Below, piece after piece: positions 7,540 through 44,700 of a DNA stretch of 64,000 bases. Positions within the stretch are counted from its first letter, which is position 1. Every line of letters begins with the position of its first letter. This DNA is from Dimorphilus gyrociliatus (Eukaryota > Animalia > Annelida). The position numbers and the translations under genes were made by a program. The stretch covers positions 682,001-746,000 of the forward strand of contig CAJFCJ010000019.1 in NCBI GenBank assembly GCA_904063045.1. The letters run 5' to 3'. Under the pieces are notes generated by a model, which worked only from the letters and a program-made list of their open reading frames with translations, did not search any database and had not been told where the DNA came from.

Positions 7540-8920
7540 TTTGGTGGAATTTGTCTGTAAATAATAAAAAAAAAAAAACCGCAATATTTATTCCCGTTAG
7601 ATAGGCCTAGTAAAAATATATAAAAAGAATTGCTTGTACGTTGTAAACAAGTTTGAAGAGAGGAATAAAGTAGTAATTTTTGATGAAATATGAGTACAAT
7701 ATACAAGTATATTCAAAATGAATAACTGATAAATTAGGTATTTACAATTGTTCTATATAATGAAATGTTTGGAATCTGGGCGGGCTCAATATCAGACAAT
7801 ATTTACAATCATTATAAGGAAATCAATTGTCTACTTTTAGATCAATAAAAATGCAATTCGATCTAATTAAAGCATAAGAAAAATTATTGTTATTTTTTTT
7901 TTTTTAAGAAAAAAAAAACAAACATGAAAATCAAAAAAACAATATTTTTTTTTATTTTTTAGTACCAGTTTTAGCCCATACAGTTAGAAAACATTTACTA
8001 ATTCAAACGTTTTTTTTTCCTGCTCTCTTTCTCTCATAGAATATCTGGAAAACTTGGAAGAATTTTTGTTTTTTACTATATTGTTAATAATAGTATCTTA
8101 TTATTATTATAGTTTTCTCCCTGTCTATTGCAGTCTTTATTTTCTCTTTTATTCTATTTATTTATTCATTCTTTCTTTATTTCTTTCCTTCCTTCCTCCC
8201 TCCCTTCCTTCCTTTAGTATTTATTTAAAAAAAAAATAAAAAAGACACACCTTTCCTAATATATATTACAATACATACATCTATAATAAATATAGAATAG
8301 ATTTACCACTTCCTACCTCTGTAATATTTAAAATGTTAACACTTATAGAAAGGACAGCGGAAACGGTTAAAGAGTAGATTATTTACAATTATAGAATAGC
8401 ATTAGTTTAGAATGATAGTTATCAAAATGAGAAATACGACACTATTAATGATTCACTTACACTAGAATAAAAAATTTTTTTTAAAAAATAGAAAATAGAG
8501 ATCGTTGACTTTCAATAGGCTTAAAATTTTATTGGTATTCCCAGAAAATCTTATAGTCTTCTCCATGTAAATTGTACAAGTATGGAAAATAGGTGATCAA
8601 AGCTTCAACAACCACCGAGGAAGTAGAATATACATTTCTTTAGGGTATTTTGATAAATTTTAGATATTATTTCTATACATAGAAGAATTTTGATCATAAA
8701 TATCGAATAGTTTATGATCGCTTTAAACTCGTAGACGAGGCGATTAGCCAATAATAAATTAGCTTAAAATTGAAAAATTCGTAAACAATCGTCCTTCGAC
8801 TTTATCAAATCTACTCATCAAAAATAATCGCAGACAGCACATTGAGACAGCAATTATATTTATATGAAGCTCTCCCTGAGCAATCATTCACAAGAAAACA
8901 GTAAACAGATCAATACTTAC

Positions 8921-36046: not shown

Positions 36047-37303
36047 ATGAAAGTTAGAAACAAATATATTCAAATAAATAATTCCTTTTATTGTTTTTAT
36101 TCTATTTTCCAGTTTTTTATAACATTTGCTGTTTTCATTTGCTTTTCCCAAATTGCAAGTGGAAATAGAGCTTTACCCGTGAGAACCCAAAGTGAAATAG
36201 TTAAGGTTTTGGATGATATCTTCCGAAGCAGAGACCTAGTATGAACATATTTTATATTTTGATATTCATTAGTCTATTTACTTTTTGTATTATTTAGAAA
36301 TGGGACCAAACAAACTATTTGGTGAATAGAGCTGGATTTCTCGCCAACTGCGGTCATTTTGAAGGAACCGAAAAATTAGAATCAGTGAATCTTCCAGCTA
36401 AAGATTCTTACGTAAACACTCAATCGGGTATGAAACTGCAAGTAGAAATTGACACTGAAGCTGTTGATTCTGAATCAGTTCATTCCGAAATAATGAGAGA
36501 TACAAGAAGATGGGATAGACTTTGGGACTGGTCTAACCGTCAATACGATCAGATTTTGGCCCAGGTAGTTTGAAAGTTCAAATAACTCAAAAAAACAAAA
36601 TTCTTTTATTATCATGTTTCGAATTTAGGCTAGAGGTATGCGACATGTTGGCTGTGCTATTCAACCTTATTGCCAAAGATCTCGGGCGGGTAGTCGTTGG
36701 CTTCACCTCGTCTGTTTATTTGCTGAGGATCAAGTGTAAATGACGATATCATAGTTTATACAACTCTTGTTGAAGTATTATATTTTTTTTATTTATCTTT
36801 TTAATAGAATAAGCATAGAATCGATTAGAAGACGTAGCAGAAGAGAAGTAGGTGACGAGTTCCCCAGTGGTCGTCGTGTACCTTCCGCACCATTCAATTC
36901 TTTGAATGACGCAGCCAGAGCATTCACCGAAGAAAATCGAAAGAGTGCCGAAATAAACTTTAGACCATTGAATGTGAGAGGTTATCTCCGATGGGAAGCC
37001 TATTTAGAAAATCTTAGTGGAACTATTTTCTCCTGTAGTTCAAGAGAGAGAGAGAGTAACAAATTAAGACTTGAGAGACAAGATTCAAGATACAATGTAT
37101 TTTTCGGAAATTCTCCAAACGATCGATCAGATACAGATAGAAGTATTGACGATTCTATTCGGGATGTACTTGTCGAAGCTGAAAGAGGAAGAGGAAATAC
37201 ATTCAGAACAGTTGGATGTTGCATGGGTCATTGCGAATTAAGAGGAGATAGAAGAGCAGTAACAGATCCAACAGAAGTTTGGGTTGCTTGCATATTCGAG
37301 TAA
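36047..37303 (+). CDS. Secreted protein with two divergent CAP/SCP-like domains separated by a furin site (exons 36047-52, 36113-238, 36298-564, 36629-735, 36808-37303)
   Basis: Signal peptide. Domain 1: L|KWD...FLANCGH...YDQILAQ|ARGMRHVGCA...C...LVCLF. RRRSRR linker. Domain 2: LRWEAYLENLS...RTVGCCMGHC...WVACIF. All splice phases are compatible. The 3' end could alternatively splice at 37299. Confidence 0.6.
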
Positions 37304-37572
37304 GTATATTTTTTATTTTTCAGTTAAACTATTTATAGAAACAGAAAGAAGCGATTATTCTTATCTTGTTCTTAGTTTCTTGTACGAAAGATTTCATGAT
37401 TGATAATGTTTTTTTTTTTGTTTTTCTTATTTAGAAACTAAAGAACTATAAAAAGTAAAATATTAAGAATATATAAGAAAATTAGCTATCTTATTAAAAA
37501 GAAAAGAAGTTTAATAGACTTTTATCTTAAAATTATCATTGTAATTTTGAATAAATTGTATTTTTTGAACCT

Positions 37573-38898
37573 TCAAACTTTAACTAATTGCTTTCCGACA
37601 TTTTTTCCCGACATCATATCGCAAAATGCTTTACCAATATTTTCGAAACCAATTGTTATTGATTCTTTAGTTTTTATCTTATTCTCCTTATACATCTCTA
37701 TTAGTTTATCTCTTGCATCTGCAAATTGTTCAGGATAGTCCAGCACCAAGTACCTCTCTCTAGTAATATTTCTTTCTTTCATTATTCTTTCAATTGCCGG
37801 AGACAAGGGTGATGGATAGGGAACGTCTTTGTTATAATTTGCTATTTCTCCGCATAGTACTGCATGAGAGTTGTCATTCATATGGCTAATAACATTTTCT
37901 GTAATTGATCCTCCAACATTATCAAAATAAACATCAATCTTGTTCGGGCACAGCTCCTTCAATCTTTCCATTACATTCTCCATTCTATAATTTATTGCTG
38001 CCGTAAAACCAAGCTCTTCCGTTAATATTCTACACTTTTCATCGGATCCACAAATGCCAATGACCGTCGTTGAACCCCAATTCTTAGCAACCTGTATCAT
38101 CAAAATATTAATCGGTTATTCTAGATAATAAGATATTGTTAAAATAAGAACTATTTTCTTGAAACTACCTGTCCTGCTATCGAACCGCACGAACCGGCTG
38201 CTCCACTTATGACACAAGTACTATTTGGCTTCACGAAACCCTTCTCTTTTAGGCCTATATAAGCTGTCATTCCAGCTATTCCTAAAAGGCTGATATATGA
38301 GGTTAAATTATCGGCTTCGACATCTTTCTTATCAATTGTGCGGAGAAAAATGGAATGGGGGGCTTCAGCGTCAAGGACAAAGATTTTTTTCCATTGCCAA
38401 TGTAAAAGATTATGGATGACGTCACCTTTCTTATAATTGGGATGGGCGCTCTCTTCGACAATACCAATTCCTTCAAATCCGTCGAGAGTTTCATTTAATT
38501 GCCATGGTTCTGTATAGTCAACACCCGTATCGAGGTTCATACGACATCTCTGAGTAGTATATAATTAATCTTATATGAAATATCAATAAATTTAGACAGA
38601 TCTTAAAAAGAAAAACAAATTAAGGGATATAAGTGATATTAACCAAAGCAGGGTCGGTCGATATATAGAGTGATTTAACGAGTAGTTTCCCTTCCGTTAA
38701 TTCGTCCTTAGATGGGAGCAAAGTCCTCTCACATCGAAAATTTTCAGCCGTCGGTGTCCCATCGGTTCCTGGACGGTTATTTAACACAATATGATAATTA
38801 TCCACCTCGCTAGAGGTAGATGAGAAGTACCTATTAAAAAAATTCCAATTCGTTCCTCTATTACGTGCTAATCTAAGGGTCAATTTAGCTCCATACAT
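37573..38898 (-). CDS. PTGR2: Prostaglandin reductase 2-like MDR oxidoreductase (exons 38898-38644, 38549-38169, 38091-37573)
   Basis: VLNNRPGTDGTP, VKSLYISTDP, VISGAAGSCGSIAGQ, GICGSDEKC, GFTAAINY, DVYFDNVGG, VLCGEIANYN, AFCDMMSGKNVGKQLVKV. Confidence 0.88.
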
Positions 38899-39211
38899 TT
38901 TACACAAGATCTTTATATGTCTAATATCAGATGAATGTCGGGAGGCGCTGCGTGTAGTAAAGAGACACATGATAGATGGCGCCACTATATAATATTTTAA
39001 AATAAATTTTTCAAGAGCTTAGTACTCCTTTTAGAAATAATTTCTCGAAAAGTAATAAACTTTTTTTTTATTAACAGTTAAACATTTTATCAAATCCTTA
39101 ACGAAATATTTAAACTATATAAATAAATAAAAAATATTTAAGATACTTTCATTCCAGTTTGCGTTTAAAAACACAATTAATAATAAACTAAAATGAAATA
39201 GTTAATATCTC

Positions 39212-41566
39212 TTAGAAATGTAAACTTTCCTTCAAACCAAAATTGTTTAATAAATTCCTAGATACAACAGCTAATTCGTCATCCCACATAATTTCGGCTA
39301 CATTTTGAATAAGCCCTTCCCTCGTTAATTCATGATCTGTAAAAATTAATTCATCCTCCTCAATTGTAACTTTTTCTTGAATATAAACATCCGTTGTTCC
39401 ATTAGGATAATCGAATTCTTTTTTTAATGCACGACACTGTTTGTCAACGTGGGAAAAACGATTAATTATTGCAGCTGCTTCTTCAACATTCCCAGTTAAA
39501 CGTAGTTCGTGTATTTGAAAAAACATTTCCGATACTATTTTAATAATATCTTCAATGGGTGTGTCTCTATCATGTGTATAACAAACTTTTCCAGTTCTAA
39601 GATTTATATTGAATTCTAATCCCATAACCCCTTTAATCAAGAGGAATTTGAAGAAGAGAAACTTTCCAAGTTGCTCTTTACTTTCCCAAGATCCGTTTGG
39701 AGGTATTTCGGCACAGAAATATTCTAAAGCTGTTATACCGCTAACTAAAGAATTAATTAACATAATCCATTGTACTTCTTTCATATTAAGATTACTATTT
39801 AGTTCAAATATTTCATGTATTTCCGGTATTGTACTTAAATATAAACATAAACATTCCCTCCTAAGAACTTCAAGTGGCCTTGAAAGATTACCAAACCTCG
39901 ATTCATAACTCTCGAAGGTGCGATAATAATTTCTAACTTTGACTCTATCAGGTATCTTCATTCTTATTCGACCTTTGGCAAAGAAGAGTTTATTCTTATC
40001 CTTTTACATAGAATAAAAATAAACAAAAAAAGAAATTCAATAAATCCCTTTGATATATGATTACTTAACTTACTAATCGTATCTCCCCTGCCGTTAATCC
40101 TCCTATAATTGTTTTTAAGATAATTTGAACTTTATATATTCTTAATCCTTCGTTATCAAGTAATTCAATCTCGTCGTCAGTTAGGTCTATAAAACATTTA
40201 GGAGATTGTCTATTATTATATTGTACTTCAATAACATTTTCAAAAAATACTTTTCTTTTTCTCTCTATCTTTGAATCTTAAAGAGAACAATCAAAATGGT
40301 TATTGAAAGAAAGAGAAAATATCATTAATTCTTACAAACACTTTCTTCACTAAACCAAATTACACCTGGCGAACTTCTTAACAGCCTAACCATCAACACA
40401 TCCTTGACCTTTTCACGACTTACTAAATACTGTAAACCATATACTGGAATAGTACTTGCGAACTTAGTAGAGTTTTTTTGGAAAATTTTAAGCTTTTTAT
40501 CCCAGTAATCAACTCTTAAGGCAATGTAAGTCCTGAACGAAAAACGATTTTGTATATTTCTTGGTAATTGGTCTATAAAACCAGTAATAAACACAATTTT
40601 AGAACGATAGGCTAATCGGCGAGCTCTAAGATGTTCGGTCTGATAGCCATTTTTAAAATATCTTAGATAACTTTTTACGCACTCTTTATGAGGGCCGCCC
40701 AGTTTTATTAACTGTTCCAAATGCCTTCTTATATAATGTAATGAGCCAAAATAGTAGTCGGAAATAGTTTTTACTCTAATAACCTTATTTGGTGGAATTG
40801 TGTACTCTAATGGAACATTTGAAGTATTTTCCGTTTGGGCAATAAAAACGTCAAAAATATTTCTTCTAATGTCGACTTTCCTTATTCTTGTACTGTGCGA
40901 TAAGTATCCATTTGCTTCAAGATACTCTTGAATATCTTGAAGGTCTTTTTTTGAACACGCCGACAACATTGTTCCCGTCGTGTCCATTCTACTGTCATAG
41001 AGAAATCGAAAGTTCTTTTTTAAACTTCTCCATTCTTTATCGATTGATTCAAATCTTGGCGTTTGAATATCTAGCATTGTTAGATAGACTTTTGCAAACA
41101 TCGAAAAACTCACTGTGCCTATTGTAAGACTATCAGTTTTATCAACATAATTCACAACTCCAAAATTCCCCATAATTACTGCAACGAAATCCAGGAGATC
41201 GTCTATTTCTCTGCTATTAAGGCCGGCTGTTTTCGATGCAGTTTTTAAGTCTTCAACAGTATGTTTTTCTAAAAGTTGAATTAAGCGACTAAAGAAGCGG
41301 AAAGCGGTTCTTGAAACCTGAAAAACGTTGATAATTATTTTTCCTTTATCGGTTTCTTATGAATAAATAAAGTCTATTAAATCGACTAAGGGTAAGGGAT
41401 AGAGGGATTTGCTTGCCTGAAAGAGATTGATAATAGCCCCTAGGTCACATATTCTAATTAGGTGATATATTATCCTCTTCTCCGATTTTCCCAAGGTTCT
41501 TATTTCCTCTTCTATATCTAACTTAAAAATTCTCTTTGGACAAACTTCCGGAAAATTTGTACACAT
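39212..41566 (-). CDS. Dipeptidyl peptidase III (M49)-like pseudopeptidase, ~707 aa (exons 41566-41417, 41317-40336, 40276-40074, 40000-39212)
   Basis: Collinear with DPP3 from the N-terminus (IIYHLIRICDLGAIINLFQ|VS; MGNFG) to the C-terminus (YIQEKVTIEEDELIFTDHELTREGLIQ). HELLGH is replaced by KTIIGG and EECRAE by EVLRRE. Confidence 0.85.
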
Positions 41567-41772
41567 TTTTTATTATTCATATAGATTTTCAAAATAAACT
41601 ATGATGTAATAAGCTAAAAGCTATTGGTATTAAAAAACACAGAACAATAGAGGTTTGCCTATACAGTATACTACAAACTTTGTAAAGATGATTTAGGAGG
41701 ATTATCCTCATTTTTCATATGTATTAAAAAAAGTAAAATATCTGCATATAAAAAAAAGTGATGAGGATATTT

Positions 41773-44700
41773 TTATAGATTTTTCAATGTTTCTTGTCTA
41801 ATTGATGGTAGTTTTGTATAATATTCGATTCCGTGTAAAGTTTCTTTAGACGGTGCTTTATAATATATAAGATCTTTCCATAAATCCTAAAATTTAATGA
41901 ACCTTCCTTTTAGAGATAATATTAAACTTTTTTCCTCTTACCTCGTTGGTTTGTTTAAGTTTTTCAAGTAATTTTACAATTGTACTTCTTAAACCAAATT
42001 GACAATCTCTTCTATAGATAATTGTATTACAGCTATGTAATGAAATAAGATACAATAGCGGAGAATATTTCTTATTCACTGCCTTAGCAGTTAAAGCTTT
42101 CCATTGCATTTGTAAAACTTCTTCGTTTGTTTCTTCTTCAGTAAGTAAATTTAAGGGTAGAGCACACTCTACTATTGGTAAAGCAAAGAATCTGAAAATA
42201 TTTGAATAATCTGCCCAAAACATCTTTCGCAAGCTAACAGGGAATCTTGGCATTATTGGTAAAAGTATATATTGGGAGAAAACGTAGTCTCCGAAAGATG
42301 ATGCTAGATACTCGTCCAGCAACTTCTTATAGAGATCATGAAAAGATGCTATTCCAGCAATTGTTTTCTCAAAACTCATTTTACTGATGATTGAAGGAGT
42401 GTAGTAATGAATAAGAAGACCGCTTAAATAGCAATTGACCGATTTATCCATAAAGACGTCCTGGCCTATTTCGAGAAAATATTCGATTTGGTGAAATGAT
42501 TTCAACATAAATTGATAAAATATTTACCAGCTAGAAAGATGCATAAAAATCTAGCAAAAGTAAGGCTAGGCGAAATGTGTTGTAGGTTTACATCGGGTCT
42601 CAAAGTCAGCAATAGATATATCCAAGATAGGCACCAGCTTGACTCTCTCATCAATGTTTCAGTGTTTTGTTTCGGATTATCCCCCAAACTGAAAAGTAAG
42701 ATTCTTAAATTACAGTAAATAATTTGATAATACTACTTACTCGCAAGATAGACTATATAGTTTAACTAAAGGTATAAAATGCCAATCGACTGGTAGACAA
42801 TTTTCATTTACAAATCCAGTAACAAGTGATGATATATCAAAAATATTCTTGTTAAATCGATTTTTACTGCAAATATATATAAATGTATATATAGACGATT
42901 TAGTTTTTGCATGAAGGTAAAATATGTAGATAGGAACCTATTTGTAAAAGCTTTCTTATCGTCCAGATTGCAATTACAGTATAATTCCATAATTTTATGT
43001 AAGGAATTATATGAATGTTTGAGTAATCCTTCCTTTGTAGGTTTAAATGCTGATGGTATATCTAGAGAAATTGTAGAAACGTCAGGCAAATCTAGCGTTA
43101 TCTCTGACCTTAAAATAGAATAATAATAATAGAAAAATCATAAAAATCCTATTAGATAATTTTACTTGAAGAAGTATTGACAAAATAAAATATTTTTAAA
43201 TATCCAATCAATTATATATTCATCCCCTTTTTGGAGTCTTGTAACTAATTTTAAAGACATTAAATGAAAAGGTTTCATCCAATCGTTGTATTCGTGTAGG
43301 GGCTAAAGATTTAAAATAAATAGACCATTAGGGGGGAAAGATTCAAGTATTAAATTACTTACTGTATAATAGGAAATTAATTTAATTAATTGGAATTGTA
43401 TAAGAAAATCGAATTTTGCGAAATAAGAAGAAACAATAATATCGCTTTGGCAACATCTTCTAATATATTGCAAAACTTCAGCATTTCTTAAAATAGGTTG
43501 CGTAATCTAAAAATAGATAATAACAATAATAACAATCAGCGATGTTTAGCTCACTAAAAATTTTTCTATACTTACTGACAAAATTAAGTTTTTATCAATA
43601 TCAATTAAAGTGTTACAAAGTTGAATGAGAGACAAATTGAAAGGGATAAAAGAATATTGAGAGCCACTTAAAGATATTCCATGATCTGAAATACTTCCAA
43701 AGGACGGTAACGATGATAGTGATTCAATTTTTATTCTATTGTGTTGTAAGAAAGGTGATACGGATCGAAATTTTCTCCAGTAAATAGAAAAACTTTGTCT
43801 GGTAATAAATGGTTCGATAAATTCTTTACTTAGTGATTTTGTTTTTTCTTGTAATTTAATAGCTTCGTAATGTAACTAAATAATAAAAAACACATATCTA
43901 TATTGTTAATATTCTATAAGCAAAAAAATAAAGCATTTTTTTCGTTTTTTCATAATTATTTACCTGTTGCGTTTCAAATTGAAAAAAGGTATTGAAATAC
44001 TGAAAACAGCTTGAACAAAGAGTGATCTCCTCTTGAGACAGCTAATTAAAAGAGTTCAGATTTGAATGATATATGTATTCAAAGGTGCGAAAATACAACT
44101 CACTTCTATTAAATGATCATTTATTATCCTGTTTAGGGGATCTTTTAGAATACTTCTTATAATTTCGTATAGGCCGGAAACATGAGACCAATTTAGCTCA
44201 GGAAAATAGCGGGAAACTTCCTCCTCATCAATTACGCATAGTTTATCTTTATTCGCCCATTTTTTACCTTGTACAGCGTGCAAACGACCTATAGCCGCTG
44301 TTAGAGATGTAAATAATGTTATCAACTGCGATTTTAAACGGCAATCGTTGGTTTTTTGTAAAGTCTGGACCAAAGTTGCATAATATTCTCTGTTAAACAA
44401 AAATATTATAAAATAAATAATAGCTTATAATAATTTCAGTATCTGTTTTCGTAGAACTTGATACGTACTCGAAATTATCTAACCCATATCCAAGTAAGAC
44501 AGATGTAGACCATAATTTCAAAATCTCTGATAGTAAATTCTCTGGAAGAGGTCTGTGAGAAAACAAGAGTATATAATAAATGTCAATTTATTAGATATAT
44601 TTAGTTTACCTATTCAAATTTTGAACCGTATAGGCCACTAATTTAGGTAATATTTTATAATTTTTCATCTAAAAAAAATACAGATTATATACATTCTAGA

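Follow-up and report, generated by a model that had tools for sequence, protein, structure and literature searches.

The locus described here raises the question of what becomes of a peptidase gene after its active site has been lost, and whether such a copy is a relic, an enzyme of another kind or a protein kept for a role that needs no catalysis. DPP3 has been studied as a cytosolic zinc peptidase, and it has a second, non-catalytic role in mammals, the binding of KEAP1. The gene considered here lies in the window, by which we mean the whole stretch of 64,000 nucleotides that was analysed. It is like human DPP3 (DPP III, MEROPS M49; 3fvy, 3t6b, 5e2q) in length, in domain order and in the predicted fold of its two large exons, and is referred to below as the dead DPP3 gene.

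The gene model was re-derived from the sequence and from spliced transcript contigs. The contigs were taken from a public run of 2017 (run X1); they are identical to the window yet skip introns, and the run was therefore regarded as RNA. The features of the gene are as follows:

41566-39212, minus strand: whole dead DPP3 gene, four exons, 2124 nt, 707 codons, stop-free
41566-41417, minus strand: exon 1, 150 nt, 50 aa, with the ATG at 41566
41416-41540: region covered by transcript contig 3, which supports exon 1
41416-41318, minus strand: intron 1, 99 nt, GC-AG (donor GCAAGC after cag), phase 0, joint seen in transcript
41317-40336, minus strand: exon 2, 982 nt, 327 aa plus 1 nt, the N-terminal (lower-lobe) part
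40335-40277, minus strand: intron 2, 59 nt, GT-AG, phase 1, joint seen in transcript
40276-40074, minus strand: exon 3, 203 nt, which holds the former zinc motif
40073-40001, minus strand: intron 3, 73 nt, GT-AG, phase 0, joint seen in transcript
40000-39212, minus strand: exon 4, 789 nt including the stop, 262 aa, the C-terminal (upper-lobe) helical part
39211-39153, minus strand: 3' untranslated region, at least 59 nt, transcript contig 1 reaching 39153

The transcript contigs confirmed introns 1, 2 and 3, and the uninterrupted four-exon frame of about 707 aa proposed in the initial annotation was recovered without a stop. The chance that a random frame of 707 codons would be open at 30% GC, estimated from base composition, is about 1e-25. 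The orthologue in a related species, which is described below, starts at the position matching the ATG. A GT donor for intron 1 is impossible anywhere in the 7-nt ambiguity of the joint, and only GC-AG fits. A donor for exon 1 at the GT at 41386 was ruled out, because both the transcript and the orthologue place a GC-AG intron at 41416-41318. The direct joining of exon 2 to 40186, giving 687 aa, was also ruled out, since in four genes the sequence of 40276-40187 is conserved and coding. The GC donor of intron 1 is kept in the related species (GCAAGT; contig L008, 6629-6754), and intron 1 of the canonical DPP3 uses GT.

The host genome is compact (78 Mb in 349 contigs, about 30% GC). On the upstream side of the gene there is an RPAP1-like gene (41894-42508, minus strand; TPR_RPAP1, 174 bits), the ORF of which stops only about 330 nt from the ATG of the dead DPP3 gene, and on the downstream side there is an oxidoreductase with an ADH_N_2 domain (38151-38985, minus strand).

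Sequence searches and structure predictions were carried out exon by exon, never on the joined four-exon protein. The Pfam profile PF03571 (Peptidase_M49; cut-off 21 bits) matched exon 2 with 31 bits over profile positions 21-208 and exon 4 with 83 bits over positions 319-546, in the correct order. When a profile of the dead copies alone was aligned by hhalign with canonical DPP3, the probability was 98.7% (E 1.7e-16, 279 columns), and phmmer aligned exon 4 with residues 484-706 of human DPP3 (3t6b) at an E of 1.5e-8. The hhalign alignment of exon 3 alone with ...QVGLHELLGH was collinear and weak (E 0.018), this exon being too short for significance; phmmer searches of PDB sequences with exon 2 alone and exon 3 alone gave no meaningful match. 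The AlphaFold model of exon 2 (pLDDT 64) and the AF2 model of exon 4 (pLDDT 75) matched only DPP3 in Foldseek searches of the PDB (E 7e-10 and 6e-8, respectively); as canonical DPP3 sequences were present in the input alignments of both models, the fold match is partly built in, and the structural comparison that had been proposed as a check agrees with DPP3 to that extent. In the ESM Atlas, the search by features gave no result and the search by shape returned only M49 or zinc-hydrolase clusters. The protein is about 20% identical to canonical DPP3, and many core residues are kept, for example in the N.GNY, GFI, W...ES.S.F and GD.E.A blocks. By homology, therefore, the gene belongs to M49, with a significant and ordered profile match over the length of the family, and the collinearity with DPP3 asserted beforehand was borne out.

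To compare the motifs, we used the canonical DPP3 of this genome and human DPP3 as references, with human numbering. The changes found are as follows:

40118-40101, minus strand: HELLGH replaced by LKTIIG (H450K, E451T, H455G)
39874-39854, minus strand: YEECRAE replaced by LEVLRRE, hence EECRAE by EVLRRE (E508V; aligned directly to human DPP3)
39691-39659, minus strand: NWRQAHMQARF replaced by SWESKEQLGKF (H568E)
40582-40556, minus strand, in exon 2: GFIESYRDP replaced by GFIDQLPRN (E316D, Y318L)
GINIPNY strand: replaced, with N391/N394 lost
KKPR segment: replaced by DYPNG, with R669 lost

Thus, neither the HEXXGH zinc motif nor the third zinc ligand E508 is present, and the substrate-anchoring residues (E316, Y318, N391/N394, H568, R669) are gone as well. 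The initial annotation had reported the loss of the zinc motif at 40115-40098 and of YEECRAE at 39871-39854; these positions are exact and translate KTIIGG and EVLRRE, respectively, and its reading of GFIESYRDP as GFIDQLPRN was located as listed above. The zinc-motif site of the orthologue reads LKAIIG, and each of the four dead sequences has a basic residue (K, K, R, K) at the position of H450. A search of 37000-44000 on both strands for an alternative exon with HExxH or EExRAE, which could have restored the motif, found none. The absence of the ETGE loop, which had also been pointed out, is true and uninformative, because the canonical DPP3 of this animal lacks ETGE as well and reads NPLTGK there. 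Since the gene belongs to M49 by homology and yet fails in every catalytic feature, we regard it as a non-peptidase homologue. To judge from these residues, its product would be unable to bind the catalytic zinc or to polarise water.

It might be argued that the protein remains an enzyme, in which the DPP3 scaffold carries another active site or chemistry. The constraint along the whole length of the gene (see below) is strong, and relatives within M49 that have other activities have been described, such as the 'new DPP III family member' 5yfb, which is among the fold matches. However, the zinc site has not been replaced by a cluster of His or Glu, both lobes lost their substrate-anchoring residues together, and neither the Pfam nor the fold searches point to another catalytic family. 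We consider this explanation very unlikely.

The genome contains exactly three M49 genes, and the dead DPP3 gene in the window is not the only one of its kind; a second dead paralogue is present in the same genome. The two genes outside the window are as follows:

C13:836519-838882 (another contig): canonical DPP3 with HELLGH and EECRAE
G000:C13:833786-836121 (L007 3789-6076), minus strand: second dead DPP3 paralogue, directly downstream of the canonical DPP3

A canonical DPP3 bearing HELLGH, the search for which had been suggested, is thus present elsewhere in the genome, and it shares 45-50% of its residues with the mollusc, fish, insect and cnidarian DPP3s used for comparison. The motifs of the second dead paralogue read LRSVVGE and ETFRRQ, the same class of motif loss as in the window gene. 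Two intron positions are common to all three genes: intron 1 of the dead DPP3 gene is at the position of intron 1 of the canonical gene, and intron 3 is at the position of its intron 2, 14 residues past the first residue of the motif. The exon structure of the second dead paralogue is as in the window gene, including the extra phase-1 intron (intron 2), which the canonical gene lacks, and exon 3 is conserved as coding sequence both in the orthologue and in the two copies of the second dead paralogue. The two dead paralogues are only about 25-32% identical and occupy separate loci. The second one is acidic (pI 5.4), keeps the equivalents of E316 and H568 and has no internal 64-nt intron (see below), in all of which the window gene differs from it. 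In the related species, the second dead paralogue (L013 8330-10633) has an RFC1 gene on its upstream side, and the 2.7 kb that come after the canonical DPP3 (L010) are empty; as the placement is different in the two species, one of the arrangements must be a rearrangement. Another observation on contig C13 is a weak match of 39 residues (29 bits, E 3e-5) to the end of exon 2 in the dead-DPP3 profile at 847211-847333 on the plus strand, some 8 kb away from the canonical gene; there is a TAG stop within the match, which may be a relic fragment.

A syntenic orthologue of the window gene was found in a related species (Logan contig L008), where the order RPAP1, gene, oxidoreductase is retained. 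It shows the same dead motifs, has identical lengths of exons 1-3 and is 67-78% identical per exon (about 70% of residues overall). Only two indels separate the two genes, both in frame: a single codon, and an insertion of 35 codons in the relative. The latter is located in exon 4 of the orthologue (L008, about 8750-8860) and adds to a C-terminal loop a highly acidic low-complexity stretch of 35 residues (D, E, N), which the window gene does not have. The comparison with a relative had been proposed as a check, and the dN/dS obtained (Nei-Gojobori summed over exons) was 0.153 with a bootstrap 95% CI of 0.115-0.197, far from 1 and uniform over the exons (0.19, 0.16, 0.16 and 0.13 for exons 1-4); its exact value is rough, dS being about 1.1 and near saturation. 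For this reason we compared dN, which is independent of saturation, across genes for the same pair of species: it was 0.170 for the window gene, 0.154 for the canonical gene and, with the orthologue on L012/L013, 0.171 for the second dead paralogue. In their protein sequences, both dead copies today change about as slowly as the working peptidase does. As the orthologue shares the dead motifs, purifying selection has acted after the loss of the catalytic residues. The identity of introns was tried as a neutral yardstick and dropped, because short AT-rich alignments are unreliable.

These data bear on another reading, in which the gene is a pseudogene (unitary or young), a duplicate in decay that merely happens to have an open frame. 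All catalytic motifs are indeed lost and, as described below, the observed mRNA is unproductive. However, the frame stays open over 707 codons at 30% GC, introns and splice sites have been preserved, there are no stops or frameshifts in either species, and dN equals that of a working enzyme. The orthologue is intact at a dS of about 1.1, with a dN/dS of 0.15 and all indels in frame, and since it shares only about 70% of residues it is not from the same species. The data contradict the reading of a decaying duplicate, and we give it almost no credence.

Expression had been named as a further check, and the contigs of run X1 showed that the gene is transcribed and spliced; the assembled isoform, though, is frame-shifted. 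The cause is an additional intron within exon 3 (an 'exitron'):

40250-40187, minus strand: internal intron, 64 nt, GT..AG, beginning with GTATTT after aaa and ending with TTTTATAG before acc, with a good polypyrimidine acceptor

Transcript contig 1 (1372 nt, 0 mismatches) lacks these 64 nt and represents the sole isoform assembled, although contigs of this kind show the presence and not the absence of isoforms and give no isoform ratios. Removal of the 64 nt leaves a 26-nt piece of exon 3 and shifts the frame, and ACC TAA arises at the joint, so that a stop stands at codon 388, after 387 codons and 113 nt before the last exon junction. The orthologue has ATC where the window gene has GTA, so the donor is absent from the relative and was considered to be derived in this species. 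The codons within the 64 nt have a dN/dS of 0.09, and the values downstream and upstream of the splice are 0.13 and 0.18, respectively. The 64-nt splice is either a defect of very recent date or the source of an unproductive isoform that is minor or regulated, and such splicing may limit how much the gene yields in this species.

A further explanation is suggested by this splice, namely that the pseudoenzyme is real in the lineage while the gene is under silencing in this species. The new GT in exon 3 would then truncate the protein after 387 codons, leaving the basic N-terminal lobe alone or a target of NMD, and the downstream frame would be a relic. The sole assembled isoform, the derived donor and the position of the stop ahead of the last exon junction all agree with this. 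On the other hand, the contigs do not testify to the absence of other isoforms, the codons removed by the splice are under constraint as well (0.09), and the dN/dS of 0.13 downstream of it does not exceed the 0.18 upstream, so that any loss must be very recent. We regard silencing as improbable, less so than the two alternatives discussed above.

A motif-less copy that is intact, transcribed and as slow-evolving as the real enzyme is best understood as a selected, non-enzymatic 'dead peptidase'. In our judgement the gene is, with high probability, an M49 pseudopeptidase, that is, a DPP3 paralogue with a predicted two-lobe fold and no catalytic zinc, kept by purifying selection and putatively serving in binding. 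The initial annotation had argued for selection on a new non-enzymatic role: this interpretation is supported by the canonical DPP3 elsewhere, the dN/dS of 0.15, the lack of a rescue exon, the transcription and the fold matches to DPP3 alone, and we infer the new role itself.

The charge of the protein gives a clue to this role. The description of the sequence as Arg/Lys-rich is true for the exon-2 part (net +18, pI 10.1) and not for the exon-4 part, which is acidic; the whole protein has a pI of about 8.9 and a net charge of +12, the pI being calculated from summed residue counts. For the exon-2 lobe, the net charge is +18 in the window gene, +21 in the orthologue, -12 in the canonical enzyme and -4 in the other dead paralogue; the N-terminal lobe of the dead DPP3 gene is thus basic, whereas that of DPP3 is acidic. 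Judged by composition, the basic lobe in both species suggests an acidic partner, which could be nucleic acid, an acidic protein or the head groups of lipids.

To gain insight into the origin of the dead copies, a maximum-likelihood tree was built from the C-terminal region. The second dead paralogue (T), the window gene (W) and its orthologue (O) form a clade (T,(W,O)) with a support of 100/99, a grouping that joins long branches. A very long stem leads to the clade. The distance between the two paralogues is about 17 times that between the two species, from which it follows that the split of the dead paralogues is much older than that of the species and that both have been retained ever since. 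No position for the dead clade among the canonical DPP3s emerged from the tree; in the AU test, an origin from the lineage's own DPP3 was not rejected (p 0.22), which is no proof of it.

On the preferred reading of a selected pseudopeptidase, the gene arose when DPP3 was duplicated, and the data agree with an origin within this lineage of animals. A burst of change probably came next, seen as the very long stem shared with the second dead paralogue, and since then purifying selection has been as strong as on the working enzyme. The three zinc ligands, the catalytic Glu, the transition-state His and the residues holding the N-terminus and C-terminus of the substrate have all been replaced. A Lys now stands at the site of the first zinc-binding His (Arg or Lys in the other paralogue). 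The present role is probably binding and not catalysis, with the exon-2 lobe turned to a putative acidic partner, and part, perhaps most, of the mRNA would be made unproductive by the 64-nt intron, acting as a regulatory brake or being a recent defect.

An extended form of this reading may be put forward tentatively, as a possibility that we hold to be rather doubtful: the dead genes would constitute a small and old DPP3-derived pseudopeptidase family with two members in at least two species, the basic lobe of the window member would bind an acidic ligand (nucleic acid, acidic protein or lipid), and its dosage would be set by regulated unproductive splicing inside the exon. If this were true, it would be the first functional non-catalytic M49 protein.

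Inactive paralogues of peptidases are familiar from other families. DPP6 and DPP10 are inactive members of the S9B dipeptidyl-peptidases and act as auxiliary subunits of Kv4 channels. Like the proposed pseudopeptidase, they are full-length peptidase paralogues that have lost a catalytic residue and are kept for a binding role; they differ in belonging to an unrelated fold and clan (serine, membrane-anchored) and in having one catalytic residue changed, whereas in the window gene the whole site is replaced. The sperm S-Lap proteins (M17) of Drosophila and the SMIPPs of the scabies mite are inactive peptidase duplicates in structural or binding roles (PMC7815109, PMC5956821). They resemble the dead DPP3 in being lineage-restricted duplicates retained after the loss of catalytic residues, and differ from it in belonging to other families, in being multi-copy expansions and in having a known tissue or secretion context, while the dead DPP3 has two copies and no apparent signal peptide. 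Since such dead paralogues are widespread among other peptidase families, the finding extends a known theme and does not open a new one. Within M49, full-text literature searches found no paper on a catalytically dead member, in line with the earlier statement that no described pseudoenzyme of this kind was known.

Two dead paralogues under selection at the level of an enzyme imply that the DPP3 scaffold can carry a function needing no catalysis, and they offer a natural separation-of-function system for those roles of the DPP3 fold other than the cutting of dipeptides. The intron within a coding exon is a compact case of a single base change that puts a conserved gene under splicing control, or starts its loss.

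When exon 4 was searched by phmmer against 1.84 billion representative proteins, one orthologue and canonical DPP3s at 22-26% identity were obtained, and word searches with exon 2 and with the profile of the dead copies returned only the two genes of the related species; further members of the dead copies were found neither among the representatives (with exon 4) nor by the word searches. Our verdict is that the pseudopeptidase is lineage-restricted. Two other motif-less, M49-like ORFs were observed in unrelated, AT-rich, eukaryote-like contigs. One of them, P0026 (L016 774-1721, an ENA metagenome contig), has no His at the HELLGH site and reads EFLKAE; the other, P0021 (a Logan contig), reads DEFRSL. 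Dead M49 copies may, for this reason, have arisen repeatedly.
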